Part shown: positions 4,309-31,345 of the stretch, piece after piece
Layout of the letters: each line of letters opens with the position of its first letter
Position numbering within the stretch: position 1 is the first letter of the stretch
Assembly: GCA_038496445.1 (NCBI GenBank)
Contig: JALMLS010000596.1
Location: forward strand, 124,001 to 188,000
Source of the DNA: Trichosphaerium sp. ATCC 40318
Taxonomy: Eukaryota > Protista > Tubulinea
DNA: 64,000 bases
Direction of reading: 5' to 3'
Translations under genes and position numbers: made by a program
The notes under the pieces: generated by a model
Seen by the model: the letters and a program-made list of their open reading frames with translations, nothing else
What the model was told of the DNA's origin: nothing
The model's database searches: none

Positions 4309-4816
4309 AGTTAGTGTATATCTTTTGCACAATATATAGCAACGGGTGGATGATAAACAGTCTTGTTTGTACAGTACTGTACTCACTGAAATTACAACAA
4401 CAATAAAAATTTCATCAAAAATTGATTTAAATCACGTTTTTTGAATAGAGAGAACTTTATTAAGTAGTTTCGCTTCTTATATACAATCACGCACGCGTGG
4501 GAAATATGTTTTAACTGTTTTTATTGTGCTTTTTTGACTTTGAACGTCAAAAAAAAATCAACTCTATTTTGCATAAAAAAAAACTATTTTTGCGCAGAAG
4601 ATTTTATACTATTTTCTCTTACAATTAAAAAATGACCAATGGCACATGGGAAGCTTTCTTTTCTTGTTGGACTTATAGAACGCGGCCAAAAGGATTTCCT
4701 TGCAGGCATTGTGTGAATGAAAATGCAGTTGGTTAACGGTATGTTCAAAACCATATAGATAGTAGATCAAATACACTTGTTCTATATACTTGCATAACGT
4801 GGCTCAACTGATAAGG

Positions 4817-5956: not shown

Positions 5957-6727
5957 ACTAAGAGTCCGGTAACATATCATCATCATAAACCAGAAGAAGT
6001 TGGAGATATCATGACAACTTATGTCTAATGCACTCTGCTGATTATACATTGTTTGCATTATGTTACTGTGTTGTAAGAAAATGAGTGTACTTTTAAGTTC
6101 TGTTTGTTTTTGAACGTTAGCCATAATGAGTCAACTGTTATTTCACATTAATGACTACCCATGTTGAGAGTATGGCTGCCGTTTTTTGGTTTGTCTTTGA
6201 GATTTCGCCTAAAAATCCCATGCCAATTTTTTTGTTGTACAACAAACAGTTATTAATACGCTTTCTGAGGTAAGCAGGGAGAGATTCAGGTCTAGCAAAC
6301 CGTTTATAAACTCAAATCAACAAATACTAAAAGTAGTGCATCAAACCACTCAAAAATCATGCCTACACAAGCACAGGTGTTTGGGGTTTGAGTACAATGA
6401 ACCAATTGAAGAAGGTTCTACAGGTCAGCACAAAAAAAATGAAACATTGTCAAAATACCCTCATATGTGAGGGTGCAGAGATAAAGTAACATGTTTAAAA
6501 AGGTAGTAAACGACTACCATTTTTGGGTAATTTGGATAGCGACTTTATTGCTAGCCAAACTCCTTCCAATGATACTAGAGTATTCAAGGCAATTGATTGG
6601 AGCTTTTTAGACTATGATGCCTATAATTTGTAAAAAACACATGTAAAAACTTAACCTACTCATGGAGATATTGCAAGATAATTTTGAACATTACTTATAA
6701 GCGAATATGCCCGACATATTAATTATA

Positions 6728-7480
6728 GTATTGTGTGTTTCATTCAAGTTTTACTAATATTTTCTAGAAAGTGAGTTTTTAGCACTTTTAGTAGATCTAA
6801 CAAGATCTGACACTTCTGTCAAATGGTGTAGATCTACCACAATGTGAACTATTTGTGTTACAATGTTGTCCTTCATTGTATGACTTATGTACCTTGTAAG
6901 TGATAGCAAAATTTTCATGTAAGTTTCAACAGACCATAGAAGATGACCGCAGCATTTTACCTACACAAACTATACGCAGTACGATCAAACCACAGAAGTG
7001 CTCATGAGCTAAAAGCGAATTAAAAAGGTATGATGTCCTACAAAGCTATCGCATTACCGCCAAACACGGTATGAATGCCTTAAACACTGTTTGCAGTATG
7101 TTTTGCTTCAAAAAATCAACGTACGTGTATAGCTTACTAGCGCTACGCCTGCGCCTACCCCACGCTAACAGAAGCGCTATGGTAGCATCCAAACAGCAAT
7201 GAAGGTGTAACAACGTCAAAACCGCCAAAACACCACCAGCGTTGCTGTAGGCTTTGTAAACGCCGCTAGGCGTCAAATATGTAAATAAAAAAGTTTGCTC
7301 TGGGGTTTGTTAAATCACGTGGGTTTGAAACGGTTGGATTCACTGGACAGGCGTGAGGGTAGATCACAATTAAAAAATGGCATTTGCAAGATCTGTCAGA
7401 AGTGCCAAATCCGTCAGATCTGACAGATCAGGCAGAAACTGGATTATTTTTGCTAAAACTTGAATGAAACAGACAATATC
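6728..7480. repeat. Second internal inverted repeat pair (about 6728-6830 / 7385-7480), rich in AGATCT
   Basis: attgtgtgtttcattcaagtttta vs taaaacttgaatgaaacagacaat; atctgacacttctgtca vs tgtcagaagtgccaaat. Confidence 0.7.
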
Positions 7481-7752
7481 GCTAACAATTTAGGAAAGAA
7501 AATGAATTATCGTTGTCAATAGATAATGTACAAAAAATAAATTTGTTTTCGGCTAGGACTTGGCAATTTTTTCCAAATGGGAACTACATAATAAATTACT
7601 CTACTAGCCCGCAGTTAACGACATGTATTTTTTCAATATTATGTGAAAGGGTCGAAATAAAAACCGAGCCGGCTCACTATTCGTTCAAATAAAGAGGAAC
7701 AAGATATAAAGTCAATTTTATTCTATCAATCAGTTTTTAAAGCGTACCAAAC

Positions 7753-10515
7753 ATGTCAAACGAAAGCTCTGACGAAGAATTTTCTGATTATGAGGATTCA
7801 GAAGATTTCCTAGCTCAACGCGCTAAATGGAATAATCAAGAGATCGGAGAAGAGAAAGAGAGTATAGTAGAGAAGCCAAACAAATATGGTACGGGAACTA
7901 CAAAAAACAGCGAGAGACAAAACGTTAAAAAATATTTAATATGGCGCGCGTGGGAACCTAAAAACAAAAAAACGTGCCAAAACAACAGCAAACGCGGTTT
8001 TTCTCTTTTTTCATTAATCTGATTCTGTGATGTTAGGACTCGTTGATCCAGAGCACTTTATGATAAGAAGAACATTCAACACAAGCGGCTTTGTTAAAAA
8101 GTATCCACCCAAAGTTAATGGCTCAAGGAAGCAAATTGTGTTTAAAACAATACAAGGGTTTTATGGCAATAAACACGGTACAGCATCTTCAAAAGTGGTT
8201 GTTACGAAAGTGGATGTCGCAAAGTTCCCTGAAAACGCAGGTACAAATTATTCACACGACTCATACCAAAATGCACAAGATTCACCAACTCGAACTTATT
8301 TTTTTGTTTATCACGTGGGCGCCATTTGGTGAAACTTTTTATTCGAACTTTTCATATTTTTGTCTGAAAATCTTCACGTGTTTTCGATCAATGTAGAATT
8401 GAAAGTCTGATTTTAATAGGATTCGGTATTTCGTTTGTTTGGCATGACCCCGAACGTAAAGCAAAAAAAGTACAGGTTGTTGGTACATTTAACACGTGGC
8501 GAAGAGATAGACCAATTACTCTTCAGTGTATTGAGTTACACAGAGGTACGTAAAAATCGTCTTCTTATTCGTCTTTCGTCTAACTTGAAAGTGTAGAGAA
8601 TGTTTGGGCTACAGTTGTATCAGAACTACCAGATCTTGATGACGAAGATGCCAACCACGAGTATATATTTATAGTTGATGGCAAAGAGGTACAAGCATTA
8701 TCATACACTTTTTATTGATTTATTTTCAGGTTGTTGATGACAATAAAAAAGTTGTGGATCGCACAGATGGAAATGGAAAAGCGAATATCTTAGAAGATAC
8801 TGAAGAACACAACTTAGGCATAGAATCGACTGACGGACCATTCTTGTACTTTGATAAGGTATCTAAAACCTCACAACTTTTTGTTTTGTGCTAAACACTT
8901 TTTGCCTAGGAGCCAGAAGTACGTACAATACATGGATTGCAATAGTACATTTAATTTACTCAACATAGCCAAATGATTTCAATTGGTACCTCAACTTCGC
9001 ACACACAGATGTGTTCGAGTATTATGGTACAAAAGGTTTATTTGCTCAAGACGAGATTCAAGTTGCTGAGCATCCAGCTCTTGCTTCTGTTCGTGAAAGT
9101 ACGCCCTGCTGAACCATACTCATAGCTTTATTGCTTCTTTTTAATACTTTGTTCCCTTTAGTGCTACTTCAAAAAGCTGCTAAGGCTGATGGTAAATCAA
9201 AACAGTTAAATACTTATGCACGTCAATACGAAAAGGGAAATATGGAAACTTCATCTCCAACACCCATTCTCATTCGGTACCTTCCATTTATTAGTCGGCT
9301 TCTTCATTGGTAAATAATCTTATTGGGTTTTTTTAATAGTGGCGTTGAACGTCTTGGTGTTATTGATACAGAGAAGCTGTATGGCTCAAAATTAGGAAGA
9401 ACGAAATCAAAGAATGCAATTAAAGCTGGAATTTCCAAAGTTAAGAATGGACCTACAGTGACTAATCTTATTTGGTACGGAAATACTATTCGTAATCTAT
9501 TTTAAAAATCGACTGACCTTTTATGTTAGCATGGAAGCACCAGGTGCCTGAAGAAATGTTTATCACAGAAATTGTATTCACTGTAAAATAGGGTGCCAGA
9601 AAGATTGGGGAAAAGAGTACAAAAAGTGGCAACTTGAGTATGCATTACGTACTGCTTACACATCATTTGTATCTGGTACCCTTTTTTTTTAATGCATTCA
9701 AGATTTTGTTTCCATTAGATTGACATTTGTAGCTGTTCATGAATCTAAGATGGGTCTTGCAGAAAAGAAGGCCGATGAGGATAAAAAGGCAGAAGATAAA
9801 ACAGAAGACGCCGGTGATGAAAAACAGGACGATGGTGATAAAAAAGCAGAAGCTAAAACAGAAGACGCTGGTGATGAAGAACTGGACGATGATGAAAAGG
9901 ACTCTGACAATGACTCTGATGAAGATGAGTCTGAAGAAGATGATGAGTTATGTGTAATTATACACACTGGTAACTGGTACGTTCTAATACAAGTATTAGT
10001 TTGATTCTAATCTGATAATTGAAAATAGGGGTTGTGGAGCGTAAGTTATTTTAATAATGCGAAGATCGAACAAGTTTTATTTAATTGATAAATGTCTTGA
10101 TAGGTATGGCAATGATTGTGAGTTGATGGCACTAATTCAAATCGCTGCCGCTTATTATGCCAAAGTAAATGTACTTGTTTACTATCCATTTGATGATAAA
10201 GGCGCGGTATGATTTAATAACAACAAACAAATTATTAGTTTTTCTTTCTAATAATAAGTTATTCACATTCTTCACAGAGCGCACTAGAGTCTGCACAGTC
10301 ACTATGGAGTGCATGGATAGGAGAGGAAAATAGTGATGAAGAAGGCGGTGAAGGCGATAAAACTGGGGGTGAGAAGGAAAGATACGAAGTACGTTCACAA
10401 TGATTCGTTTGAAGTTCAACAAAGTTTATTTTCGCAATAGGTGCACTGCCCTTACATGTTCTTGGATATGCTGTACCAGAGAAAGTATAAATGGCGTACT
10501 GGTAACAATACCTAA
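7753..10515 (+). CDS. CBM48 + PARG-like macrodomain protein, copy 2
   Basis: Same exon structure and motifs as copy 1 (AQDEIQ, TGNWGCGAYG); ends KWRTGNNT*. Confidence 0.85.
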
Positions 10516-10817
10516 AGTTAGTGTGTATCTTTTGCACATGTACCAACGGGTGGATGCTAAACAGTCTTGTTTGTACTGTACTCACTGAAATTACAACAAC
10601 AATAAAAATTTCATCAAAAATTGATTTAAATCGTGTTTTGAATACTAGTCCCACAAACCAACAGCGGTTAACGACATGCGTACTACCAGCTTTTTCCAAT
10701 ATTATGTGAAAGCGTCGAAATAAAAACCGAGCCGGCTCACTATTCGTTCAAATAAAGCGGAACACAAGATATAAAGTCAATTTTATTCTATCTATCAGTT
10801 TTTAAAGCGCACCAAAC

Positions 10818-13564
10818 ATGTCAAACGAAAGCTCTGACGACGAAGAATTTTCTGATTTTGAGGATGATGAAGATTTCCTAGCTCAACGAGAGAAATGGGA
10901 TAGCAAATCAATGGAAGGCTCCAAAATCAAACGTGCAAACAAATATGGCACGTGCGGACCTAAAAACAAAAAACGTGCCAAAATAACAACAGCAAATGCG
11001 GTTTTTCTCTTTTTTCATTAATCTGATTCTGTGATGTTAGGCCTCGTTGATCCAGAGCACTTTATGATAAGAAGAACATTCAACACAAGCGGCTTTGTTA
11101 AAAAGTATCCACCCAAAGTTAATGGCTCAAGGAAGCAAACTGTGTTTAAAACAATACAAGGGTTTTATGGCAATAAACACGGTACAGCATCTTCAAAAGT
11201 GGTTGTTACGAAAGTAGATGTCGCAAAGTTCCCTGAAAACGGAGGTACAAATTATTCACCATCAACAACGCTTGAACAACCAAAGATTCATGCCAAAATG
11301 CACAAGATTCACAAACTTGAACTTTTTTTTTATTTATCACGTGCGCCCATGGGCGAAACATTTGTTTGAAGCCTTGATATTTCATACGAAAGGCGTTTAT
11401 CTTGACGCTGTTTATCACGTGTTTTCAATCATTTTATGATTGGAATCTGAGTTTAATAGGATTCGGTGTTTCCTTTGTTTGGCATGACCCTGAACGCAAA
11501 GCAAAACAAGTACAGGTTGTTGGTACATTTAACACGTGGCGAAGAGACAGACCAATTAATCTTCAGTGTATTGAGTTACACACAGGTACGTAAAAACACT
11601 GAATTCCCAAGATTAACTTGAATATGTAGAGAATGTTTGGGCTACAGTTGTATCAGAACTACCAGATCTTGATGATGAAGATGCCAACCACGAGTATATA
11701 TTCATAGTTGATGGCAAAGAGGTACAAGCATTATCATACACTTTTTATTGAATTATTTTCAGGTTGTTGATGACACTAAAAAAGTTGTGGATCGCACAGA
11801 TGGAAATGGAAAAGCGAATATCTTAGAAGATACTGAAGAACACTACTTAGACATAGTATGGTCTGAAGGACCATTCTTGTACTTTGATAAGGTATCTAAA
11901 ACCCTCACAACTTTTTTTTGTTTTGTGCTAAACACTTTTTGCCTAGGAGCCAGAAGTACGTACAATACATGGATTGCAATGGTACATTTAATTTACTCAA
12001 CATAGCCAAATGATTTCAGTTGGTACCTCAACTTCGCACAGAGGTAAAGTTACAATTCATTATACAGCGCTCTTTGTTTGAATTGTTTAATTGATTGGTT
12101 TTAGAGACATTTTCAAGTACTATGGCGCAAAAAGTTTATTTGCTCAAGATGAAATTCAAGTTGCAGAGCATCCAGCTCTTGCTTCAATTCGTGAAAGTAA
12201 GTTTTGCTGAACCAAACTGCTTGTAGACGAATTTTCTTTATAATTGTTATTGGTCTTAATGCTATTACAGTGCTACTGGTAAAGGCAACTGAGGATGATG
12301 GTAATATAAACCAAATAGGTACTAATACACGTACACTAGAAGAAGGAAACCTCGCTTCTTCATCTCCAACACCCATTCTTATTCGGTATGTTCACACTTT
12401 TAAAAGTTCGTCTTCTTCGTAAATAATCTTATTGGGTTTTTTTAATAGTGGCGTTGAACGTCTTGGTGTTATTGATACAGAGAAGCTGTATGGCTCAAAA
12501 TTAGGAAGAACGAAATCAAAGAAGGTAATTAAAGCTGGAATTTCCAAAGTTAAGAATGGACCTACAGTGACTAATCTTATTTGGTACGGAAATACTATTC
12601 GTAATCTATTTTAATAATTCAACTGACCTTTTATGTTAGCATGCAAGCACCAGGTGCCGAAAGTTTTGTACTAGAAAGGAATTGTATAACTTCAAAAAGG
12701 TTGTCAGAAAGATTGGGGAAAAGAGTACAAAAAGTGGCAACTTGAGTATGCGTTACGTACTGCTTACACATCATTTGTATCTGGTACCCTTTCATTCATT
12801 CAAGATTTTGTTTCCATTAACTTGATGTTTGTAGCTGTTCATGAATCTAAGATGGGACTTGCAGAAAAGAAGGCCGATGAGGACAAAAAGGCAGAAGATA
12901 AAACAGAAGACGCCGGTGATAAAAAACAGGACAATAATGAAAAGGACTCTGACAATGACTCTGATGAAGACGAGTCTGAAGAAGATGATGAGTTATGTGT
13001 AATTATACACACTGGCAACTGGTACATTCTAATACAAGTATTATTTTGATTCTAATCTGATAATTGAAAATAGGGGTTGTGGAGCGTAAGTTATTTCAAT
13101 TTGAGAAGAAAACGGACAAGTTTTATTTAATTGTTAAATGTCTTGATAGGTATGGCAATGATTGTGAGTTGATGGCACTAATTCAAATCGCTGCCGCTTA
13201 TTATGCCAAAGTAAATGTACTTGTTTACTGTCCATTTGATGATAAAGGCGCGGTATGATTTAATAACAACAAACAAATTATTAGTTTTTCTTTCTAATAA
13301 TAAGTTATTCACATTCTTCACAGAGCGCACTAGAGTCTGCACAGTCACTATGGAGTGTATGGATAGGAGAGGTAGATAGTGATGAAGAAGATGATGAAGA
13401 AGGTGATAAAACTGGGGGTGAGAAGGAAAGATACGAAGTACGTTCACAATGATTCGTTTGAAGTTCAACAAAGTTTATTTTCGCAATAGGTGCACTGCCC
13501 TTACATGTTCTTGGATATGCTGTACCAGAGGAAGTATAAATGGCGTGAAGGTAACAACACCTAA
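10818..13564 (+). CDS. CBM48 + PARG-like macrodomain protein, copy 3 (extra intron 12044-12104)
   Basis: Same motifs; WYLNFAQR|DIFKYYGAKSLFAQDEIQ; ends KWREGNNT*. Confidence 0.85.
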
Positions 13565-14380
13565 AGTTAGTGTATATCTTTTGCACAATATATAAATGGA
13601 ATAAAGGCAACACCTAAATTTACAAGAAACCATAAGTGTTAAACAATCAAAACAATAAAACACATTGTCACGTGACAATCACTTTTTGCATTGGTCTGTA
13701 AGCCAATTTTGTGAATATTGGTTTCGTTGCATAAAGTTTTGATATTCAGCTGGGTTACTATCACAAACAAATAAATAAACAACAAAGAACAAATCTACGG
13801 GCATCTGCAAGGTGCGTGCATCGACGAACATAGATACTCGGTACCAGAGACCTTGCCTAGAAAGTATTTGAACAAACAAATAGTATTACAGTGTCCTCAT
13901 TGTTTTCGTTCAAATGTACAAAACTTGTGTGGCCTATAAAGGTTACTTATCTAGCAGAAATCTAAAAACATTAATTGTACTTATACAAAGACAGTGGCAT
14001 GGTTTCGTTAGAAAGATGATAAGAATCATTCAACGGCTTACAAGTGGTCAATAGTGTTATACTAACATGTTTGTACTCAGTTATCATAACAGAACCAGAA
14101 GGTTTGAATTCACATAACCTTACACGCAATAGTATGTAATTATTAGCATATACTAAATGTGGTTCCTTCTGCTAATTTTTTTACAGTAACATATTTCAAA
14201 CACCTTCTTTTTCACTCAGTTTTCGAACAGTTTTTTTACCTTTCTGAACCGTCTTTATGGTAACTCAAACCGCGTTCAAATAACAAACAGAGTTATTCAG
14301 AAAAAGTATTCGTTCAAATAAAAGAGGAACGCAAGATATAAAGTCAATTTTATTCTATCAAGTCATTTTTTTCACTAAAC

Positions 14381-17059
14381 ATGTTAAACGAAAGCTCTGA
14401 CGGTGAATATTCTGATTTTGAAGATGAAGAAGATTTTATATCTCAACGGAAGAAATGGTCCAATGAAACAACAGAAGAAGGCTCTACTATCGAACGTACA
14501 AACAAATATGGCACGTGCTGATAGCTAAAGGAACTAGTGAGCTTTATTTCACTAATATGGCGTTAGGACTCATTGATCCAGAACACTTTATGATGAGAAG
14601 GACATTCAACACAAGAGGCTTTGTTAAAAAGTATCCACCCAAAGTTAAAGGCTCAAGGAAGAAAACTGTGTATAAAACAATAGCAGAGTATGCTAAACAC
14701 GGTACAGCATCTTCAAAAGTGGTTGTTACGAAAGTAGATGTCGCAAAGTTCCCTGATAACGCAGGTACAAATTATTCACCATCAATAACGCTTGAACACA
14801 ACGCAAAGATTCATGCCAAAATGCACAAGATTCACAAACTTGAACTTTTTTTTGTTTATCACGTGCGCCCATGGGCGAAACATTTGTTTGAAGCCTTGAT
14901 ATTTCATAACCCAACGGTTTTCGAAAATCTAACTAGATAAAATTTTGGCTTCTAGAACAACATATTTTTTTCACGTGTTTTGAACTGGTTTAACATGTGA
15001 ATTTATTAGGACATGGTGCATCATTTGTATGGCATGACCCTGAACGCAAAGCAAAACAAGTACAGGTTGTTGGTACATTTAACACGTGGCGAAGAGATAG
15101 ACCAATTAATCTTCAGTGTATTGAGTTACACACAGGTACGTGAAGCTCTTTTTCGTCTTCTTTTTCGTCTAACTTGAAATTGTAGAGAATGTTTGGGCTA
15201 CATTTATAGGAGATCTTGAAGAGGGAAAACATGAGTATGTGTTTCTAGTTGATGGTAAAGAGGTACAAAGGTGTTATAATACTATTTATTGATTTACATG
15301 TAGGTTGTTGATGACACTAAAGAAACTGTGGTGCTTGGTGAGCATGGAAAAGCAAACGTCTTAACTGTGGCTGAATCTGAACACCACATGGAGCTGATTT
15401 CTGCCGGATTAGGTCCCTTTGAATATAATGATAAGGTACCAAACCAGTTAATTAACTGAACAAAAAACTTATCACTTCTTTACTTCTTAGACTTTGTCTA
15501 ATGATTTATTTGTAGACGCCAGGTGTACGCATATAACCCTTTTGTAGTTTGTTCCTTAATTGTATCACGTGGTAAATTATTTACATTGCACAAGGATTCT
15601 GATTTTAATTGGTACCTCCACTTCGCGGGCAGGGATGTTTTCAAGTACTATGGTTCAAAAGGTTTTTTTTCTCAAGGCGAAATTCAAGTCGCAGAGCATC
15701 CAGCTCTTGCTTCTGTTCGTGAAAGTACGTTTACTGAAACAGCAATTCCACACCCCTTCACAATTTGAACATTGTAAAACGTGTTTTCTTCTTTTTTTAT
15801 TGTTCCTGAATGTCTCCTTTCTTTTAACGTGTCTGTAGTGCTACTTGAAAAAGAAAAGGAAGTTGATGGTAATATAAAGCAGTTAGGTACTTTCACACGT
15901 CAATGTGAAGAAGGAAAAATGGAAACTTCATCTCCAACACCCATTCTAGTTCGGTATGTTCTTTTTGTTTTTTTTATCAATTTTACATACTAAGTGAGGT
16001 TTTGAAATAGTGGTGCTGAACGTCATGGAGTTGTTAACACAGAGACGCTATATGGGAGAAAATTAAGAGAAGTAACTTATCCTCGAGCAATTAAAGCTGG
16101 AATTTCCAAAGTTGAGAATGGACCTACAGTGACTAATCTTATTTGGTATGGAAATAATATTCGTAATAATTTTATTCAACTGACCTTTTATGTTAGCATG
16201 GAAGCACCAGGTACAATAGCAGTTGCCTAAGCAATGTTCTAATAGCTAACTATTGTTAAAACAGGGTGCATGAGTGATTGGGGGAAAGAGTACAAAATGT
16301 GGCAACTTGAGTATGCGTTACGTACTGCTTACACATCATTTGTATCTGGTACCTTTTATTCATTCAAGATTTTGTTTCCATTAGATTGACATTTGTAGCT
16401 GTTCATGAATCGAAGATGGGTCTTGCAGAAAGAAATGCTAAAAAAGAAGAAACAGATGAGAAAAAAGAAAAAAGCGACAAAGTCGTGGAGGATAGTGAAG
16501 TAAATGTACTTATACATACAGGAAATTGGTATGCTTGTATAGTATGATTTTATTGTTGTAACTTATAAGTCAATATAGGGGTTGTGGAGTGTAAGTTTGA
16601 CAACACAAGACTCTGTATAATTATTCTCTAAATGTCTTGATAGGTATGGCAATAATTATGAGTTGATGGCACTAATTCAAATCGCTGCTGCTTTTTATGC
16701 CAAAGTGGATAACCTTGTGTATTATCCCTTTAATAAGATAGGCGAAGTACGTCTCCTTTTTACAAATTACAACTCTTTTTTTGTGTATTAATTGTAAATA
16801 GGAGGCATTTGATAATGCAAGGTCTTTGTGGTACAAATGGACAACTGGCAGAGAGGAACTCAATGATTATGACAGTGATGACAGTTGTGCAGGAGATTAC
16901 CTAGACCATGCTGCTGAAATAAAAACCGAAGTACGATCCAGACAACATTTTGAACTTTCGTTGAAATTAATACATTTGTACAAATAGGTTTTCTGCCCGT
17001 ACTTGTTCTTGGATTTTTTGCACAAGAGAAAGTATAAATGGCATACAAGTAACACCTAA
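14381..17059 (+). CDS. CBM48 + PARG-like macrodomain protein, copy 4 (most divergent; QGE instead of QDE)
   Basis: Most canonical CBM48 (LEEGKHEYVFLVDGKEVVDDTKETVVLGEHGKANVLTV); GFFSQGEIQVAEHPAL; HTGNWGCGVYGNN; 9-nt micro-exon 15516-15524; ends KWHTSNT*. Confidence 0.8.
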
Positions 17060-18901: not shown

Positions 18902-21225
18902 ACCATTGGCAGACTCATTCATGTGCCACCTGAACACGATCAAATTCTGAATTCATAATGAACTAAATCACGTGAATAGTATGAATGTCAAGTTAACGGT
19001 CTGGTTTTCTTAGTATTGTAATTTTTATACCACTTGAAAACGTGCCATGCAAACCGCTCTCAACAGAGTTGATACTGGTAAACATGTACAAAGTACTGTT
19101 TGTTAAGAGTGTGGCGTATATGGGACAAACAATGTTCCTGTACCAGAGATTGACATAAAGTTGTAATTGCTCCTTACACAAAAAAAAAAAACACATGTAC
19201 AATGAGTGATACCGCAACGCATGTACTACATTTGAAAAAAAAATGAAACGGATAAACCCAAACACTACGGTTAAAATTACAGGTTGGGCGAAGTTGGGCA
19301 GACGAGTACAAAAAAATGAATGAAAATGAATTTTTTCAACCAATTTATTATTTATTGGTTTCATGAAAAGACCATGTTTACCGTAAAAACTACTGAATTC
19401 GATCAAGCTTATTTTCACTCTGAACGACTTGATTGGGTAGTAAAATGGCTCTGGAGTTACTCATTATTTTGTATAGGTTCGCTAGTTGGTATATTTGTGG
19501 CTAATTGTCAACTTACGAGAAAGTATCTGTTAGTGCGTAGCACGCTATTACAACTTACGCTATGCGTATGAATTTAGTCAAAAATCCATGAATTGTGTAT
19601 TTTGAAAAAAACAGTATACATTCGTGTATTCATCCGGATTGGAAGAATGTTACTCTAGAGTAGCATTCCGATATTAAAAATGTCAAGTGAAAATTTGGGT
19701 GCCCCTGTGAACAAATCCCGTGAGAAGAAAAAAAAATCGGGCATTACCCAAGAGCACTTCTAATCTAAAGATAACAACCGTCTTTTGATCGACTGAAAAG
19801 CGAGGAAACTACAACTAAGACTACCTTCCTCCGCTATGTCATGTTATAGTATCTATGATTTTCAAGCAAGTGCTGTATGAATGAGTTTGTGAGTACATCC
19901 GTCAATTGCTACAGGCGTGTATTGAAATAAGTGAGCTCTGGATGAAAAAATACGTATGTAGGCTATTGGCAATAAGCTGTCACAGCTAGGTTCTATGGCA
20001 ATCCGCTGGTGATACATATTAGTAGTTTCTCTTGCGCAAGATAATTAATCAAACACCTATTGGCGAGCATCACCAACGAAGAGACATTAGAGCCACATCA
20101 AGTTACACGCTAGTTGTTAAATAAAAAAGTGTTGCACAGATGGTTTAACTAAACTTTTTGTGATACATATTACTGCGGTAGAATGTAGCCCTATTACCTA
20201 CCAAAGCGACATGCACCCGCTGTAGTGGGTATTAGCAATGAAGAATGATGTGAGGACGGGAACATACAACAGTTTAATATGGGTTGAAAATTTGAAGTGC
20301 CTATCAAGTATGAGAGCGACTGTGTTGTTTAGCAAGCACTCTCTTTCTGAATCACATGTTTTAATCACTGCTTCATTGTTTTTAGTTGCGGTATAGCAAC
20401 TATACAACTACAGTGGTTTATCTCAAGAGTGTGGGAAAAGTAGTTCTTTTGAAAACTTCATACTGCAACTTGTGATACTGCGGTCTGTATGACACTAGAG
20501 AGAGAGCGATCCGTGTACCTTTCTAACAAACGGAAGGTGTATAAATACTTCAAGGTGAAGTGCACATATACTGCGGTGACTTGTAACAGCAAGTGCTACA
20601 AAACACTAGTCTACACAAATGATAATCAATTTGATTCTGCCCTGTGCCTATTAAATACCCTAAAAATTACTGGAGTCATGAGGGTCTAACCTTTCGTGCA
20701 CTTGCAATGAGGATGGTACTACAAAGTGTGTAGCGAAAAAACTTTAACAATCTTGTTTGTTTTTTTTTTCATTTTGAGAAAGAAAGCAAGGCCCTTTTTG
20801 TACTCCGGAGCTTGTTACTGTTTTCAAACAATTTTTTTAATAGCTAAACAGATGTCGTTCATAGAAGCGAACTGGTTCGGGTCGTAGAAGGAGCGAAATT
20901 ATTTCTAAATCAATAGTTCACTGAACACATGTGGATTGGAAGTAAAACACCAAAACAACCCAAAAGGCATCCATGCGTTTCGTATTTGGCGATATTTGAT
21001 TATAAATAAAATAAATCACATTAACCCGACAGGTTGGACTTTTTTTCTGTTTTGGTTTGTAAATACCAGCACATTTTCCTGTGTTGTTTTTTTCATAGGG
21101 CGAACATTGCTGTTGGTTTCGCTTTATTTTTTTTTTTGTGCTTTTAAGCCAACATTGTTGATCATTTACCAATAACCTTCAAACAACAAACAACAGCTCT
21201 AGTTTGCGTACAAGCCCCTTCTCTC

Positions 21226-21972
21226 ATGAACTATTCATCGATTCTACTCTATCTCTGCTTTTCTTTAGCCCTGGCCTTCAACTACAAAGCCATTACTCTC
21301 AACGCTCACAACACTTGTTCTGGCTGTCGTAAAGACATGCACGCTGGACAATTTGTGTACTGTGATGGCTCTGTGCCTGGATCAACGGTAACAAACTGCC
21401 ATTGGGTTGGCGGCCCTGGAGACTGTTCCTTCCCTAGAGATACTTCAGTTACAAAAGCTCAATGTGAACAACTATGTAATGCAGACGATCGCTGTAATTA
21501 CTACACATCCTACCACGGAAGTATATGCAACCTATTCTACATGACCAGCTGTTCAAACACTTATAGTCAAGCATCTGGAGATACATACAAGAAGGTTACT
21601 AGCGAATACACAATGATAATGATAAAGACGAACAACGGCCAATTCCATGGAACAAATGCACCAATTAAGTACCGATATGCTTACACTGACGGAACCTATT
21701 CTCCTTACAGCGCTACCCTTGATGATCCCCGACTCAACGAGTTCCAATCAGGTGCTGTCGATCTGTTTTATATGGTCGCACCTGCAAAGAATACCGACAA
21801 GGCACTTCAAGGTGTTGAGATGACAATATTCGGTCATGATGGCTGGAATTTCTCTGAAGTTAAAATCTTTAACTCTTTTCATTTCTGTTGGAAAGATACT
21901 GCTGATATCCACCCTCTTACTACTGCAAGTGTTGTTTTACCTCTCAACGGCGATTGTAGTGCATGTAGCTAA
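21226..21972 (+). CDS. Secreted PAN/Apple + PLAT/LH2 domain protein, intronless, 248 aa
   Basis: Signal peptide MNYSSILLYLCFSLALA; CEQLCNADDRCNYYTSY....CNL (PAN); IKT....GTNAPI...LDDP..NEFQSGAVDLF...DGWNFSEVKI (PLAT). Confidence 0.8.
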   Translation: MNYSSILLYLCFSLALAFNYKAITLNAHNTCSGCRKDMHAGQFVYCDGSVPGSTVTNCHWVGGPGDCSFPRDTSVTKAQCEQLCNADDRCNYYTSYHGSICNLFYMTSCSNTYSQASGDTYKKVTSEYTMIMIKTNNGQFHGTNAPIKYRYAYTDGTYSPYSATLDDPRLNEFQSGAVDLFYMVAPAKNTDKALQGVEMTIFGHDGWNFSEVKIFNSFHFCWKDTADIHPLTTASVVLPLNGDCSACS

Positions 21973-23394: not shown

Positions 23395-24140
23395 TTAGCT
23401 ACATGCACTACAATCGCCGTTGAGAGGTAGAACAACACTTGCAGTAGTAAGAGGGTGGATAGCAGCATCGCCTTTCCAACAGAAATGAAAAGAGTTAAAG
23501 ATTTGTACTTCAGAGAACTCCCAGCCATCGTTAGCGAATATTTTCATCTCAACACCTTGAAGTGCCTTGTCGGTATTCTTTGCAGGTGCGGCCATATAGA
23601 ATACATCTACAGCACCTGATTGGAACTCGTTGAGTCGGGGATCATCAAGGGCAGCGCTGTAAGGAGAATAGGTTCCGTCAGTGTAAGCATATCGGTACTT
23701 AATTGGTGCATTTGGTCTAAAATTTTCGAGCTGTTTTTATGGTAGATACCATGGATTTGTGGCTAGTAACTTTCTCATATGTATCTCCAGATGCTTGACT
23801 ATAAGTGTTTGATACAGCTGGTCATGTAGAATAGGTTGCATATACTTCCGAAGTAGGATGTGTAGTAATTACAGCGGTTGTCTGCATTACATAGTTGTTC
23901 ACATTGAGCTTTTGTAACTGAAGTATCTCTAGGGAAGGAACAGTCTCCAGGGCCGCCAACCCAATGGCAGTTTGTTACCGTTGATCCGGGCACAGAGCCA
24001 TCACAGTACACAAATTGTCCAGCGTGCATGTCTTTACGACAGCCAGAACAAGTGTTGTGAGCGTTGAGAGTAATGGCTTTGTAGTTGAAGGCTAGTGCCA
24101 ATGAAAAACAGAGACAGAGTAGAATCGATGAATAGTTCAT
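23395..24140 (-). pseudogene. Frameshifted inverted paralog of the PAN+PLAT gene
   Basis: Near-identical to 21226-21972 but has a +1 A after TSC giving TAG at 23799, plus a replaced 49-nt vs 51-nt patch. Confidence 0.8.
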
Positions 24141-25450
24141 GAGTGGAGGGGCTTGTACGCAAACTAGAACTGATGTTTGTTGTTTGAAGGTTATTGGTAA
24201 ATGATCAACAATGTTGGCTTAAAAGCACGTGTGCACGAAAAAAAAAGTGAAGCGAAAAAAAAAACAATGTTCTGTACTGAAAAAAAGACTAGAATTTCTT
24301 ATTTATGAAAAACAGCCGAATCGGGCCTTTAAACGAAAGTTAAAAAAAACTTATGTGCACACACAAAAAAGTCTGTAGGCAATGTGATAAGTTTTGCTAA
24401 AATAATACAATATTGCTCCTTTATTTAAATATGAAAAACGTGGATGAGTTTTGGGTTGTTTTGGTGTGTTTTACTTCCATTCCACATGTGTTCAGTGAAT
24501 TACTGATTTTGAAATAATTTCGCTCCTTCTACGACCCGAAAAGCTCACTTCTATGAACGACATCTGTTTAGCTATTAAAACAAAGTCTCAAAACCGAAAA
24601 AAAACAAGCTACAATAAAAGTCAGTACTCCATACTTTAGTTTGTAGAACCCACCTCAGTCCAAGTCCAAGTGCACTAAATATTACACTTGTAGGATTGCA
24701 GTATTTATAACAAGGCTCTCATTCGCGTCATCGCTGTCAATCCCACAGCAACAGCATTTAGTCTCAACAAATCTCTTTCCAAAGACTTTTCTGCTCCTGT
24801 TAAATGGATGCCCTGGTTTATAACAAGTCCCAGTGTTCAAGTTACAGTGCACTATTTGTATTCGTATATTCATACTGCCTGACATTGCTCTCCTGTAAGA
24901 ACGATGTTTTGTTCGCAGCATCACAAGTTGCAGTATGAAGTTTTCAAAAGAAATACTTTTCCCATACTCTTGAGATAAACCACTGTAGTTGTATAGTTGC
25001 TATACCGCAAAAAAAAACAATGAAGCAGTGATTAAAACATGTGATTCAGAAATAGTGTGCTTGCTAAACAACACAGTCATACTTGATAGGCACTTCAAAT
25101 TTTCAACCCATCATAAACTGTTGTATGTTCCAGTCTTCACATCATTCTTCATTGCTAATACCCACTACAGCGGGTGCATGTCGCTTTGGTAGGTAATAGG
25201 GTTACATTCTACCGCAGTAATAGGAATCACAAAAAGTTTAGTTAAACCATCTGTGCAACATTTTTTGATGTAGCAACTCACATGTAACTTGATTCTTTTA
25301 TCTCCTACTACTACTGACTATTTGTTAATATCAGCACCTAGTTCTAAAGATATTGCTTTCGAATAAGTTTTGTGGTCACGTGCACATTTATGATCGGAAC
25401 AACTGAATATTGAATGAGCAGAATATGCTAACAAGCTTTATTTTTTTATT

Positions 25451-26972
25451 TTAGTCTCTACTATCAATGTATGTTTTCAAAGCTACATTCTTTTGAAAGA
25501 CATTATAAAAACGTTTTAATCCTTTAAAAGGAGAAAGTAATTCCGGATTTTGAGATAGTTGAATATGACTATCAAGAACATCCCAGACACCAATATCAGC
25601 AAGAGATAACTATAATTACACCCGTTAGTGTACGAGGAAATAACCAATTTACAATATGATAGTGATACTTATTTAACATACCTTTTCACCGACAAAGTGG
25701 TTAAATGGAGGGTTCTTACGGAGAAGGTTCTAGGAAGCCAAAAAGTTAAAAAAAAAGAAAAGAAAAAAAAAAGTCTGTTTTTTACAGTCAGCACGCAAAC
25801 TCATTCCTATTAAAGTTGTGCGCAAGAGCATAAATAGGATTTATATCGCATATATTCGTTGTACAGAGCAATCATAACGAATATATTTGGTAACCTCAAA
25901 AAAGAGTTTCTTCTTGACAACATACCTCTAAAAATCCAAGCCATTTTGGTGCTACATTGTTAAAGTAATCATCTTTTTCTTCTTCCTACTTAATGTAAGA
26001 ACATGAAAACACGTAACTGAGGCGGTAAAATTAAGCACCCATTTGCCACCGTATTTGACTCTACCAAGCTTTGATGAAAAGTCTTGAGCACCTTCATAAA
26101 CCATATCAATCTACATGTTGACTGTTAGTTCTTTAGTGATGGAACACAGCTACAGTAGCATGTTGCTCTTGCGTATTAGTATACCATTAAAGCATCTTCA
26201 TGTGTTTCTCCATATAACCTCGCAGATCGTGCGATATGACGTACAATAGCACCACTTTAAAAACAATCAATCAACGAACTTTTTGTTGAAAAAAAAAAAA
26301 GTGGATGATGTCCTTACCTTTGTACATAGTGCTTGCCATCAATTTCTATTTGTGGCATTTGGCTGAACGCAAACATATCAGTGTCTATCATTAAACTTAG
26401 AATAAACCCAAAATTCGATGTCGTAAATCAAAAAACAAACGAAACGACACGTGTCGTTTAATAAAAAAAATCAGAGTTCATTATACTTTCATGAACTACC
26501 ACAACATCTTTAGGTTGCCTGTAGTCGCTTTTGAATAGTTTTTAAGATGACAGCAAGTAAGTGACGTGTCAGCCCATCATACCTTTTTTCATCTCCTCCC
26601 AACCTTCTGAAATACGCTCATCTGTGAACTTGACGCCTAGCAACAATGTTTAGACGTGTCGTTTCAAAAAAAAAGCATTCAAAAAAACGGTATTTTACCT
26701 GCAGCGTGAAGGATCAACCTTATCTTCTCTCCCCTTCCTCTAATATCGAAATAGCGTAATTTTATCTTACTTTCGTCAACTATAACGTATTTAAAGCCGT
26801 TGTACCTCTGAACCAAGATCAAAAGGTTTCATATACCTTCAAAGAGCGTAAGCAAGCGATATAAGCAATGGGTATCTATTTTAACTCACGTATTGTCTAC
26901 TAACACCAAATCATTTTCGCAATAGCAAGAGGCGAATACACACAATGCCACTACCACGTACAAACTATTCAT
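25451..26972 (-). CDS. Glutathione S-transferase (Tyr-type, sigma/mu-like) with N-terminal signal peptide
   Basis: Spliced: MNSLYVVVALCVFASCYC-ENDLV...EIKLRYFDIRGRGEKIRLILHAAGVKFTDERI...FSQMPQIEIDG...VQS...HFVGEKLSLADIGVWDVLD...LKTYIDSRD*. Confidence 0.85.
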
Positions 26973-27188
26973 CACGTCTAAAGTTTACACTGTGAAAAAC
27001 TTTTCGGGTGACTTAGAGTAGCTGTTAAGGCAGCTTTTAGAGCGTTTAGTTTGCCCTTGTAGTGGAAACTTAGTTGAAGCAGATGACAAAAGAAACTCTT
27101 GATCGATAAAGACAGCGCCTCTGTTACAAAACAGAGTACGAATGAAACAATTATTTGACAAAGACATTCTTGTGTTGGCAACCTTTTT

Positions 27189-29946
27189 TCAACTGACATT
27201 ACTTTTTTTTATTAAAATGTCTGATGCCGCATCTCCTGGTGTTTGCACGTGTACACTTGTCCATCCTTTCCTCTTAAAATCCTTTGTAGCAAACCTAATA
27301 TTTTTTAAGCGATGTAATAGATACTACAGTATAGTTGACGTACAAGTGAAGCAAGCGACCTCGTTTATTATCTGGATTATATCCAGAATGAACCAATAAA
27401 GTTTCAATAACTTCATAGACTGAGTCAGGCTTTATCCTATTTCCGTCTTCTCTATAGCCTTTAATAAAGTCGAACAAGACATCTGGGCTACGCTGATGTC
27501 TGATTTCAGGACCAGGTTTGCCCTAGTAAAGGAGTCAGCAAGGTGGCATTTGACTGATTGTAAAAAAGTAATTACCTTTTTCAAAATCAACATTGTAAGC
27601 TTTGACTTGTTATAAAACTGGTAAGGGCGCTTTTCGAACCGATTATTGGCTGTTAATAATACCCAGCATAGATTTTCTACATAGTCAAAGGACCAAGCAG
27701 AACATATTTTTAGGATCTATTTCAAATAAGTCAGAAATTAACTTACAACAAATACACATCTAAATAAATGACGACATACCAATGGTAAGTATTCTTTTTC
27801 TATCCATACAAACAGATATCCTGTTTTTATTAATTTATTTGTTATTTTTAAGCTTCTCTATAAAGTTGATGTTAGTGGAAATACAAACAAAGTTTTTTTT
27901 TGAAATTTTTGTAGGTACCAAAATGCTCTCAAAGTTTGAATGTTTGTACGGTGGGTCAATCAAAACTACGAACATTTAGCACTGACAATACGCAATATAA
28001 TTACCTCCATCAAAATCTAATAGTGTTTCCCAAGGAATACTTTGCGCTGACGGAACACTGTAATACTCAAAAGTGTCCTAGAAATTGTTGAGTAAGAAAC
28101 GATGCTATAGTTAAAAAACTTCTTAACATACCTTCTCAACATCCTGATGCTCCGACCAAGCTTCTATAGTCTTACCCCAAGATTTTGGTAAAGGTTTTTT
28201 TATATTTTGCACCTGGTGTATTGGTACCAAATGGCTCAAACGCTCCTTAATCTCCAATTAAAAAAACGCCAACGGAAAAAAAGAGATAAATACCTGACTC
28301 CAAATTTGTCTTGGTTTTACTCCTTTAATAAAATAGCTTAGATCTTTTTGGTTGTCTATCGAAGACGAAGGTTTTTTCTTGTCTCCACTGTTACGCTTTT
28401 GTTTCTTCTTTTTATTCCTGATCAAATATTTAACATTCTTTGTTGCGCCGGTTACTCCAAAAGCTTCTAATGTATTTGGCTTTACACTACTTTTTTTTGA
28501 TCCCCCAGCTTGCTCAGAAGAGGTCTAAGTAATATATTAGACTACGCTTGATTTAGTTCATCATAAAATTTTAAACATACTGATGTACGACGTCTTTGTT
28601 GTTTATCAACTTTGTGAGTACACTTTGTATTAATATCAAAGTATTTTTGTACCCATGACACAACACACTCTTCAAGCTCAATGCCTTCCTTACTCTCCCA
28701 TACTGGAGCTAAACAAGCTTCGTCTATAGTCTACGGCGTATAAGCACATCAAAAAAAAAACGCAATCGAACCTTATCATTTACGACTGAAGAAGGCTCTT
28801 CCGCTAACACTTTGCTTAGCGTGTCACTATCATGTGAGGTATGTGGCAGTGCTCCAACGGATATTAGTTTTTTATAGTACGCATTGCATGTATAGCCAAG
28901 TCTATTGGGCAAGCTCTTGCTGAACAATCCCCAATTTTTTCCAACCTTTCTTTGTTGTTAGTAAATAAAATAATAATAAAAAATAAGAAAATAAACGGAA
29001 TGGTGACACGCAATGTGTCACTTTAAAATGTCTTATATTTTTCTTTGTACCTGTCTGCCGTTTCTTCTCCAACGTATATACGTCTTTAGAAATGCTTTGT
29101 GTTCGTCAAAATTAAATTGTCCTTTAGCTTGAGAAACACCAATATCTGTCAATCTAAAATAAAATTGATTCGGGTTGTCATGACGCTTTGTCCAAGAAGC
29201 AATCTTGGGCTTCTTCCATTGTTTTATTGAATCTTCCTCCCATGAATTTAATAATGTAGGAGACACTTTCTTCTTCATAAAAGTCTTCTGAGCTGTCTAA
29301 AAACGCTGTTAATAAATAACCTTTCAAAAACAAAAAAAGCGTTGAAAAAAAAAATGTCTGCACTGAATGTACCTTCCACGTTGCCATTATAAAATCATCT
29401 TCGCAAGACTTTGAACAAACCGAAATACTTCTACGCCTTGGTGATGCTAGTTTAGCTTTTGGTGAACGTAGACCTTTGGCGGGTTTTTGAAGTGGTTTTC
29501 GAGGACTTGGCGCCTTTTATCAAGTAAAAACGATTGTAAACAACAGTAATAGCTACCTCGAAGTCATCCGCCGAGTCAGAAGAAAGCGGTTCTGGTAAAC
29601 GCATGTCAGTATGTAAACTAGGTTTGTTTTTCTTCTTCTTTGGCGTCGATACGTTTTTGGGCGTTCTTGGAGGCGTTTTCTTCGTATTTGTACTTTTGGA
29701 ACAGTTTTGTAGATTACCGCTCTTTTTAAGCTGTGTACTGGCTTTACGCTTCTTTGGTGTAAAAAACGCTTTTATATTCTTTTGAGCGAACGCCTTCGTT
29801 TTTACTGGTTTGTGCTCGACTTTATCGCTTACACGCTGTCTTGTAGGCAATTTTCGTTTCTTTGAAGGCCTCTGGCTTGTTTCAGTGCCAGTAGAGTATT
29901 TCATACGCTCAACTGGTCGCTTGGTTAAGCTCCTTTTGCGTTTCAT
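27189..29946 (-). CDS. Fusion protein: Lys-rich N-terminus + p1/AMTP1-like Myb/HTH domain + MT-A70 adenine methyltransferase (MTA9/AMT6-7-like) with DPPY motif; 13 exons, about 690 aa
   Basis: One continuous frame through 12 GT-AG introns: WTKRHDNPNQFYFRLTDIGVSQAKGQFNFDEHKAFL...NWGLFSKSLPNRLGYTCNAYYKKLI, then RLSHLVPIHQVQNIKKPLPKSWGK...FDGVLIDPPY (27946-27957)...GYLFVWIEKE...FDYVENLCWV...EIRHQRSPDVLFD...KPDSVYEVIETLL...RLLHLFATKDFKRKGWTSV. Confidence 0.8.
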
Positions 29947-30113
29947 AGCTCTACTGTAATTGGTGCAAGTTTCACGAAAAATTATGTACTACAGTTGTAT
30001 AAACATTTGGTTTCTTCTTCGTACAAAGCAGTGCGAAGCGACACTTTAGACAAATTCTGACTAAAAATAAACTTAGTTGCGTAAAGTCTCAGTCGCTATT
30101 TCAGCTAACACCA

Positions 30114-31345
30114 ATGGAACCCACACAGAACAAAGACAATGACGTAAGTATTTGTAAGGCTTATAGTTTGGACCTAATGGCGTTAAAGACTCCTACGACC
30201 ATAAACGACGCCGAACTAGCCTCCGCATTACTGGCATCACTAAAGATGGATAAAAAGGCACCTGTAGAGTTTAGAGCAGACACAAAGCTTCTCGCCACGT
30301 TGTGTGTAAGTCTACAACGCCTACACCATTCTATATATTAAACAAACGCGTACAGGATATTGGTTTTAGCAAACATAAGGCAACACGAGGCCTCTTTTAT
30401 ACAGGGAACTCCAGCGTAGAGACCGCAGCGAATTGGTTAGCTAAACGTTTTTTTTTTTATTTATACGTATTACGTTATTCACACTAGTACAGGATCGTAG
30501 AGCATGAGAATGATCCTCTAGTAAACGAACCGCTAACTGAAGACGAAATTAGAAAACATACCTCTAGACTGTCTAACAGCATGTACGCGCGCAACCATGC
30601 TAACTGTATTATATCATCGGGTTTTTGTTGAGATTTACGACAAAATCCTGTTGTACTGAATCAACACGATGACAGTTCTTTATCTTTGTCGTTAAGTAAC
30701 GTTATAGATTCTCTCAAAACTTCTCTGACGTTTACGGCTTCTCTCCTGATGCCAGCCCTTACAAGATGGTTCTTTGTGTGCGAGGAGACTTGAAAATGAG
30801 CGTAGGAAAGATTGGGGCACAATGTGCTCACACAGCTTTGAGTACGACCGCGTTTGATGTCACAAACAGCTAAAAAAGCACTTTTTTTTCTACGGCGCTT
30901 TTGTGGGTTATGGACGCTATCTTAGTGATTTATTAGGTGTTTACAAGCGAATGAGCGCTAACTGCCCTACCATACTTCGAAGTTGGGAGCGTGCTGGCTC
31001 TAAAAAAGTAGTGCTACGCGTAGAAAACGATGTTGAGATGGATAAACTTGAAAGGAATGCAGTACAACTAAGTTTACCTGTTGCAACTACAAGAGATGCT
31101 GGACGAACTGGTAAGTTATCAATCAATGTCTAGAATACATAATAACAATGACTATTAGAAGTACCAAGTGGTACTAGAACTGTTCTTGCAATTTGTGGTG
31201 CGTTGTTTAACCAGACGGATTTTGTTTTCCACTGCTTTCCAAAAAAAAACCCAAACAGTGTTTTTACAGTTTACGCCTATTTATGTTAATTGTAGGTCCA
31301 TCTGGTACTGTTGATAAGGTAACTGGTAAGTTAAGGCTTCTATGA
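30114..31345 (+). CDS. PTH2: UBA domain + peptidyl-tRNA hydrolase 2
   Basis: DIGFSKHKATRGLFYTGNSSVETAANW (UBA); YKMVLCVRGDLKMSVGKIGAQCAH, WERAGSKKVVLR, DAGRTEVPSGTRTVLAICGPSGTVDKVTGKLRLL*. Confidence 0.9.

Follow-up and report, generated by a model that had tools for sequence, protein, structure and literature searches.

A Trichosphaerium gene that joins a Myb-type module to an MTA9/AMT6-7-type MT-A70 domain, and its relatives in early-diverging fungi and Balamuthia

Introduction

Must the DNA binder of a eukaryotic DNA N6-methyladenine (6mA) writer be a separate subunit, or can it be carried in the same polypeptide as one of the MT-A70 proteins? In papers on 6mA, Mta9/AMT6-7 appears as an MT-A70 protein that is bare, "inactive" and dependent on p1, a separate protein (PMC9852454; PMC7145601; PMC11761967). 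The question is raised by a locus on the minus strand of a 64,000-nucleotide stretch of DNA from the protist Trichosphaerium sp. ATCC 40318 (contig JALMLS010000596.1, positions 124,001 to 188,000; the whole stretch is called "the window" below, and coordinates are positions within it). A first-pass annotation of the window had described there a single-chain gene in which a Myb module is joined to an MT-A70 domain of the MTA9/AMT6-7 clade. Is this in fact one gene, how widely does its architecture occur, what are its two halves, and what might the fused protein do?

Results

Gene structure

The gene model was rebuilt manually from a three-frame translation of the minus strand of 26900-30300, removing introns only where a stop codon forces splicing, and the result was compared with homologues; a brute-force splice search was rejected as much too permissive (more than 200,000 paths). 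The coding region 29946-27189 resolves into 13 exons and 12 introns with a spliced length of 2070 nucleotides, or 689 codons plus TGA (Table 1). This independent reconstruction reproduces the single stop-free frame of the first-pass annotation, and the three domain-bridging introns that it had named lie exactly at the positions claimed (28771-28731, 28580-28525 and 28293-28246, each GT...AG). All 12 introns are GT...AG and 39-105 nucleotides long, and they are AT-richer than the exons (GC 0.281 versus 0.385). The frame is free of stops only when all 12 are removed, since any retained intron brings in an in-frame stop within 2-64 codons; intron 5, the only one at which the exons of the Myb module give way to those of the MT-A70-type domain, gives a stop after 12 codons when retained. 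Introns 1 and 2 are placed by frame continuity only. The 689-residue product has no methionine between residues 184 and 590, so the MT-A70 half is not translatable alone from these exons.

Residues 193-365 of the spliced product match a profile of the N-terminal module (A3) at 144.7 bits, residues 432-675 match a profile built from the MT-A70 domains of homologues (A4, positions 2-269) at 150.2 bits, and no second match to either domain profile is present elsewhere in the 64-kb window. Both halves are colinear with fused proteins of other organisms (E values 1e-44 to 7e-55). By these measures the locus is one 13-exon gene that joins a Myb-type module to an MTA9/AMT6-7-type domain, with a likeness far beyond chance, and the single-chain gene originally proposed is borne out by the spliced frame, the profile scores and the colinear fused homologues alike.

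Table 1. Features of the Trichosphaerium fusion gene and its predicted product (aa, amino acid residues).
Feature	Coordinates	Strand	Remarks
Exon 1	29946-29557	-	spliced model
Exon 2	29513-29373	-	spliced model
Exon 3	29296-29051	-	spliced model
Exon 4	28945-28772	-	spliced model
Exon 5	28730-28581	-	spliced model
Intron 5	28525..28580	-	GTATGT...TTAG, 56 nucleotides, phase 0
Exon 6	28524-28294	-	spliced model
Exon 7	28245-28132	-	spliced model
Exon 8	28077-28005	-	spliced model
Exon 9	27965-27919	-	spliced model
Exon 10	27857-27780	-	spliced model
Exon 11	27716-27576	-	spliced model
Exon 12	27522-27344	-	spliced model
Exon 13	27294-27189	-	spliced model
N-terminal tail, aa 1-177, exons 1-2	29373..29946	-	basic, low-complexity, not conserved (translation)
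Extended Myb-like DNA-binding module, aa 193-365, exons 3-5	28587..29251	-	144.7 bits against profile A3; split by introns 3 and 4
Linker, aa 366-431	28333..28586	-	basic, low-complexity (translation)
MTA9/AMT6-7-type MT-A70 domain, aa 432-675, exons 6-13	27234..28332	-	150.2 bits against profile A4
DPPY, aa 510-513	27946..27957	-	at position of catalytic [DNSH]PP[YFW] motif
E-I-R-H-Q-R loop, aa 601-606	27490..27507	-	MTA9-clade signature; equivalent to Tetrahymena MTA9 E376-L-R378-H379-Q-R

The predicted protein thus runs from a basic tail through a Myb-like module of ~170 residues and a basic linker to an MT-A70 domain with DPPY. Lysine/arginine clusters in the tail (KRKRS, SKKRK, PKKRK and PKKKKNK) resemble nuclear localisation signals, and the MT-A70 domain includes an N-terminal extension (FIKGVK...LPKSWGK). 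Fused homologues have 0-320 residues of unconserved sequence at the N-terminus and equivalent unconserved linkers of ~60-130 residues. The motifs quoted for the gene in the first-pass annotation are all present: DPPY, GYLFVW, YVENLCW, RHQRSPDV, VYEVIETLL and LFA...RKGW in the MT-A70 half, and W..RH.NPN.FYFR...WGLFS..LP.R.GY.C..YY in the Myb half.

Occurrence of the fusion in other organisms

The first-pass annotation had suggested that this organism may hard-wire the DNA-binding subunit to the partner methyltransferase, with a fusion already common among AMT6/7 orthologues named as one finding that would tell against it, and just such a finding was made. A phmmer search with exon 3 against 1.84 billion representative sequences gave 30 matches (the closest 47% identical), and among the ten exon-3 relatives that were first scanned with Pfam, five have a C-terminal MT-A70 domain (those of Dimargaris, Dispira, Cunninghamella, Bifiguratus and Calcarisporiella). 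A profile built from six fused proteins retrieved 60 proteins, about 55 of which have the module followed by MT-A70. They come from Mucorales (Cunninghamella, Rhizopus stolonifer, Thamnidium, Apophysomyces and Absidia), Umbelopsis, many Mortierellomycotina, Dimargaritales (Dispira, Dimargaris and Tieghemiomyces), Calcarisporiella and Bifiguratus, a relative of Entomophthora, and the amoeba Balamuthia mandrillaris (P0088, a 1203-residue "Myb-like domain-containing protein"); examples are KAJ1974711.1 (Dimargaris xerosporica), KAJ1964657.1 (Dispira parvispora), XP_069251417.1 (Calcarisporiella thermophila) and CAO3636362.1 (Cunninghamella echinulata).

Three contigs support the fusion independently of annotated gene models. 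The entire fusion lies in one 642-codon open frame in contig L002, everything from the Myb repeat onward (linker and full MT-A70 domain) lies in one 542-codon open frame in contig L005, and contig L001 (GCA_049309705.1, JBMUHC010001170.1) holds an unannotated homologue at 1473-3623 (plus strand, GC 0.45) in which both parts are colinear and interrupted by introns. In that last homologue the Myb repeat is apparently split near the site that matches intron 3 of the Trichosphaerium gene.

The Trichosphaerium protein has the full set of family parts colinear in one chain, namely the module with its C-terminal helix, the linker and the MTA9-type MT-A70 domain. Its order of parts is that of the fungal and Balamuthia fusions, including DPP[WY], RHQR and IETLL, and both halves align with theirs at E ~1e-50; it is 29-35% identical to the Balamuthia fusion (32% over 534 columns). 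It differs from these relatives in having DPPY where they have DPPW and, in the recognition helix, GYTCNAYYKKL where the family consensus is GYQCxNYYRKL. On these sequence comparisons the gene is not a one-off; it is a new member of a widespread, conserved and uncharacterised family of Myb-fused MTA9 proteins. That no such architecture had been described does hold up: we found no description of a Myb module on an MTA9/AMT6-7 protein in the searchable 6mA literature, in which the Rhizopus paper (PMC12019607) was covered by its main text.

Annotations of Mucoromycota and Mortierellomycotina by the Joint Genome Institute (JGI) split the fused locus into two pieces on the same contig (P0206/P0114, P0214/P0104, P0207/P0103, P0019/P0094 and P0008/P0116). 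Two of the split pairs have consecutive gene numbers (Umbelopsis 274447/274446 and Linnemannia gamsii 368137/368136). All of the C-terminal pieces begin at one conserved internal methionine (profile position 122; 113 in P0094) and are without the half of the domain that contains DPPW, and we read these C-terminal fragments as truncated gene models.

Clade and catalytic motif of the MT-A70 half

Pfam searches with single exons gave no match, the exons being too short, and the superfamily assignment comes from the homologues, which pass the Pfam MT-A70 model (PF05063) at 27.7-36.9 bits (cut-off 23.9). Which MT-A70 clade is this? The family profile matches MTA9/AMT7/MTA9-B at 116 bits (E 1e-32), MTA1 at 66, METTL3 at 26, METTL14 at 23 and METTL4 at 21. 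Exon 12 alone, searched against the Protein Data Bank (PDB), finds Tetrahymena MTA9-B (25.5 bits) and MTA9 (23.3 bits) as its best matches with no MTA1 or METTL match, and a full fused homologue used as query matches MTA9 at 1.8e-14 and MTA1 at ~2e-6. The clade signatures align as well: EIRHQRSPDV corresponds to MTA9 376-ELRHQRTSDV and VYEVIETLL to YQMIETLLP, R-H-Q-R is invariant in 23 family members, and the C-terminal stretch HLFATKDF-KRKGWTSVHVQ resembles ELFASTDN-YRPGWISVIEK of MTA9. The MT-A70 half thus clearly belongs, by sequence, to the MTA9/AMT6-7 clade, as had been proposed.

The best solved relatives are MTA9 (AMT7) and MTA9-B (AMT6) of Tetrahymena and Oxytricha, non-catalytic subunits that pair with MTA1/AMT1 in MTA1c. 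Like the Trichosphaerium protein they end in ELFA...GW and have the IETLLP helix and the E-x-RHQR-x-DV loop. Unlike it they have no Myb module, since their DNA binding is supplied in trans by p1, and they have NALW or NIKW where it has DPPY; Tetrahymena MTA9 also has an insertion of ~90 residues (228-317) that splits its match to the family profile in two, the insertion in MTA9-B being shorter. METTL14 follows a like logic, being a catalytically silent MT-A70 partner of METTL3 that aids substrate binding, but it differs in its low score (above), its RNA substrate and its lack of a Myb module.

The family DPPW aligns over the eroded NALW of Tetrahymena MTA9 in the family-profile alignment, and the erosion seen in ciliate AMT6/AMT7 is not found in the Trichosphaerium protein. 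Other MTA9-like proteins from outside the ciliates have DPPW (Acanthamoeba, Planoprotostelium and many environmental sequences), DPPL or DPPF (unfused fungal proteins) or NPPW. Judged from these sequences, erosion of the catalytic tetrapeptide is a ciliate trait and does not define the clade, and an intact DPPY is ordinary outside ciliates. Judged by general MT-A70 motifs, the C-terminal stretch of the Trichosphaerium protein seems to be without the ribose-binding arginine and the asparagine-glutamate pair of MTA1. The MTA1 residues have been named as R357, N370 and E371 (PMC9852454).

The Myb-like module and its relation to p1

The module opens with a segment of three helices ahead of the Myb part (pre-Myb; W..RH.NPN.FYFR). 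The Myb/SANT repeat itself (FNFDEHKAFLK...WGLFSKSLPNRLGYTCNAYYKKL) and a hairpin come next, and the C-terminal helix that closes the module (VWESKE..LEECVVSWVQKY) is conserved. The family alignment has the same succession: the pre-Myb segment reads VK.WS.ARI.AW..R..NP.AYYYRF and the Myb repeat EH..FM.R...W......WGLFS...P.RVGYQC.NYYRKL, followed by the short hairpin and the helix, LS..W.T..VK..E..V..W...YH, which is present in only some members of the wider module family. Exon 4 resembles the c-Myb and MYB21 repeats, the homologues match PF00249 at 14-33 bits, and profile A3 finds weak matches to c-Myb, B-Myb, SNAPC4 and WER among PDB chains. An AlphaFold model of the family, built on 35 sequences, is confident (predicted local distance difference test score, pLDDT, 85.5) and shows six helices together with a hairpin and one long helix, and Foldseek and VIA-align match it to single or tandem Myb repeats (Trichomonas Myb2/Myb3, c-Myb R2R3, CDC5L, SNAPC4, WER and RAD) with Z scores of 5-6 (maximum 6.0) and root-mean-square deviations of 1.6-3.4 Å to the SNAPC4, RAD, c-Myb and CDC5L repeats. 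The N-terminal half is, on its sequence and its predicted structure, a Myb fold.

Is it also a p1? The first-pass annotation had labelled the module p1/AMTP1-type, and this label found no support in the searches: exons 3 and 4, two family profiles, Foldseek and VIA-align all gave ordinary Myb repeats and never p1 or p2. Ciliate p1 and p2 are absent among the matches of exons 3 and 4 and profiles A1 and A3 to all PDB chain sequences at E values up to 10, and the MTA1 and MTA9 chains of the same MTA1c entries (7yi8, 8xyl, 9u92 and 9o6k) were recovered by other queries. The Foldseek and VIA-align matches are generic Myb or homeodomain repeats only, with no p1 chain among them, an absence among weak matches that leaves a shared fold possible. 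Two fungal canonical-Myb proteins (P0091 and P0092) were tried as a bridge to p1 and rejected, as they matched c-Myb only.

Solved p1 has a helical DNA-binding N-terminal region (to alpha-6), an element that binds the N-terminal helix of MTA1, and an acidic tail (PMC12485025). What p1/AMTP1 and the module have in common is the general layout only, a DNA-binding N-terminal region of about six helices, homeodomain/Myb-like, followed by a helical element; they differ in that p1 and p2 have no detectable sequence similarity to the module and that the module family is far wider than the 6mA writers. Among short proteins alone the module has 235 matches, and it is also found with U-box, HMG-box and other domains and in very long proteins of Galdieria and Balamuthia. 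The first of two asparagines reported as conserved in fungal P1 (PMC12019607) corresponds to a tyrosine in the Trichosphaerium module (by alignment to WER). As far as these comparisons reach, the p1 likeness of the module is one of analogy and not of family membership.

The best matches of the module are amoebozoan (Luapelamoeba 110 bits, Balamuthia 100). The Luapelamoeba hula transcript (P0003) has a complete 317-residue open reading frame (ORF) in which the module is followed by a basic stretch and then by a strongly acidic tail, with no MT-A70 domain. Its layout recalls that of Tetrahymena p1 and makes it a candidate stand-alone counterpart.

Evolution and the unfused paralogue

Fungi with the fused DPPW copy also have an unfused MTA9-like paralogue of 400-490 residues with DPPL (P0137, P0163, P0166 and P0162 against P0013, P0042, P0048 and P0011). 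The coexistence of fused DPPW and unfused DPPL copies in the same fungi indicates that loss of the catalytic-type tetrapeptide varies by paralogue and by lineage. A duplication of Mta9 is described in Mucoromycotina, Mortierellomycotina and Entomophthoromycotina, with Mta9_A and Mta9_B in Rhizopus microsporus (main text of PMC12019607). That duplication fits the fused and unfused paralogues of the same taxa; the main text of PMC12019607 mentions a Myb module on neither copy.

In a tree of whole proteins the fungal fused proteins follow known fungal lineages, and the Trichosphaerium protein lies outside them, beside that of Balamuthia. In a tree of the MT-A70 domain only, the fungal fused proteins form one clade (Shimodaira-Hasegawa-like approximate likelihood ratio test, SH-aLRT, 98) whose internal groups are known lineages. 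No Myb module lies upstream of the nearest MT-A70 relatives, P0156 and P0143, on their contigs.

One MTA9-like protein with DPPL (P0205, 458 residues) is filed under a beetle, Zophobas morio, and sits on a long branch among protists; it is possibly a contamination of the Zophobas morio assembly, to judge by its sequence.

Other features of the window

An uninterrupted gag-pol ORF of 1796 residues at 48504-53894 (minus strand) belongs to a long terminal repeat (LTR) retrotransposon of the Ty3/gypsy type and looks intact; Pfam recognizes in it a zinc knuckle, reverse transcriptase, RNase H, the zinc-binding and core domains of integrase, and a Tf2-type SH3 domain. Apart from this retrotransposon, Pfam searches with the other long ORFs of the window were uninformative. 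The ORFs 21148-21969 (plus strand) and 23802-24218 (minus strand) have nearly identical first 25 residues (ANIVDHLPITFKQQT...) and look like an inverted duplicate of a gene without a Pfam match. Two further ORFs, 1739-2167 and 11022-11366 (both plus strand), have identical first 25 residues (SDSVMLGLVDPEHFMIRRTFNTSGF), which is consistent with a tandem gene array at 1436-17059.

Discussion

The results above show how the gene is built, which two domains it encodes, to which clade its MT-A70 half belongs and that the fusion is widespread. What does the fused protein do? We lean, with modest confidence, toward a nuclear partner of AMT1 that has its own Myb DNA-binding module and a non-catalytic MT-A70 domain, and that is an orthologue-level member of the fungal and amoebozoan family. 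The AMT1 pairing, the absence of catalysis and the DNA-clamp role of the module are what we infer by analogy. Such a protein would work as follows: the extended Myb-type module would be tethered through the flexible basic linker to the MTA9/AMT6-7-type domain, which, by analogy with MTA1c of Tetrahymena and Rhizopus, would pair in the manner of METTL14 with a catalytic AMT1/MTA1 encoded elsewhere. The built-in module would supply or reinforce binding of double-stranded DNA beside the dimer, as the N-terminal region of p1 does in trans in ciliates, and may dock at the loop with E601, R603 and H604. The fused copy may also define an alternative complex, as in the AMT6 and AMT7 complexes of Tetrahymena, with p1 retained.

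This proposal draws on several published results. In Tetrahymena the catalytic MTA1/AMT1 has either MTA9/AMT7 or AMT6 as its partner. DNA is bound chiefly by the N-terminal region of p1, which, jointly with MTA1 and MTA9, clamps the duplex (PMC12485025; PMC11761967), and E376, R378 and H379 of Tetrahymena MTA9 contact this region (PMC12485025). Because the E-x-RHQR loop that makes these contacts is kept in the Trichosphaerium protein and is invariant in its family, an AMT1 partner with its DNA binder in cis is suggested. In the Tetrahymena models the DNA-binding domain of p1 adjoins AMT7 on the major groove (PMC11761967), so a covalent tether to the MTA9-type subunit is geometrically sensible. 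Tetrahymena has two complexes, those of AMT6 and AMT7, which are mutually exclusive (PMC11761967); the unfused paralogue that coexists with the fused one fits both this exclusivity and the published Mta9 duplication, and we count it in favour of an AMT1 partner.

Several observations weigh against it. According to the main text of PMC12019607 Rhizopus still needs a separate P1, so the fused module may add to p1 and not replace it. Neither sequence nor fold searches detected a link between the module and ciliate p1. The intact DPPY is compatible with catalysis, and the SAM (S-adenosylmethionine)-binding residues seem to be missing on the strength of general MT-A70 motifs, the numbering in PMC9852454 and the likeness to MTA9, not of an alignment with MTA1. 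The transcript is inferred from sequence and homology. Finally, in the MT-A70-only tree the Trichosphaerium and Balamuthia fusions fall, with weak support, among unfused protist forms; a topology that unites all the fused forms is not rejected by the approximately unbiased (AU) test (p = 0.128), and the fusion may have arisen once long ago or several times.

Might the protein be a writer and not a pseudo-enzyme partner, that is, an active, self-sufficient or homodimeric DNA N6-adenine methyltransferase targeted by its Myb module? Its DPPY is intact at the site of NALW/NIKW in ciliate MTA9/AMT6, the fungal fused clade has DPPW throughout as against DPPL in the unfused fungal paralogues, and an autonomous enzyme would need a built-in DNA-binding domain. 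We nevertheless think it unlikely, as the domain is of MTA9 type throughout, its motif-I region and C-terminal stretch appear nearer to MTA9 (and METTL14) than to MTA1/METTL3, and DPPW also occurs in the unfused Acanthamoeba and Planoprotostelium proteins, so that the motif alone predicts little. Moreover, in the solved complexes SAM and S-adenosylhomocysteine (SAH) are bound by MTA1 alone (PMC12485025). There is also little likelihood that the single chain is a modelling artefact, with the locus making a p1-like Myb protein on its own (retention of intron 5 would be one way) and a separate MT-A70 part or none. The transcript structure comes from sequence, the JGI annotations of fungal homologues list the N-terminal and the C-terminal part of the locus under separate, consecutive gene numbers, and the complete Luapelamoeba ORF has the module, the basic stretch and the acidic tail with no MT-A70 domain. 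On the other side, no methionine is available in the MT-A70 exons until residue 590, which lies far beyond both DPPY and the core strands, the JGI C-terminal fragments are without half the domain and look truncated, contigs L002 and L005 hold both domains in one uninterrupted ORF, and ~55 independent gene models are fused. A minor intron-retaining isoform alongside the fusion is possible.

The protein could instead act outside the AMT1 pathway, either as a chromatin or transcription factor whose dead MT-A70 domain binds protein or nucleic acid, or on RNA. The company that the module keeps elsewhere (U-box, HMG-box and the very long Galdieria and Balamuthia proteins) would suit such a role, and the fused members are functionally uncharacterised; we consider it improbable all the same, given that across eukaryotes proteins of the AMT6/7 clade are found together with AMT1 (PMC12695648; PMC7145601), that the p1-contacting RHQR loop is invariant, and that residues that bind Mta1 are reportedly kept in both Rhizopus Mta9 copies (main text of PMC12019607). 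A bolder extension, which is speculative and which we would not expect to hold, is that Myb-fused MTA9 paralogues mark a second kind of eukaryotic 6mA writer complex, ancient in Amorphea or repeatedly invented, with the DNA clamp in cis and p1 dispensable; in its strongest form the fused protein would itself be capable of catalysis, perhaps as a de novo enzyme working alongside the AMT1 maintenance complex.

The Trichosphaerium gene adds an amoeba-like protist to the carriers of a Myb-fused MTA9-type protein, and the family to which it belongs exposes a systematic mis-annotation, in that JGI models halve the locus. A natural fusion is independent evidence, of the Rosetta-stone type, for a Myb-type DNA binder at work directly next to the AMT6/7 subunit. 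It also offers a candidate explanation for the duplication of Mta9 in early-diverging fungi, in which one copy would be bare with DPPL and the other fused to Myb with DPPW. Rhizopus and Mucor, for which knockouts and 6mA maps are already available, would allow direct tests of all these points.

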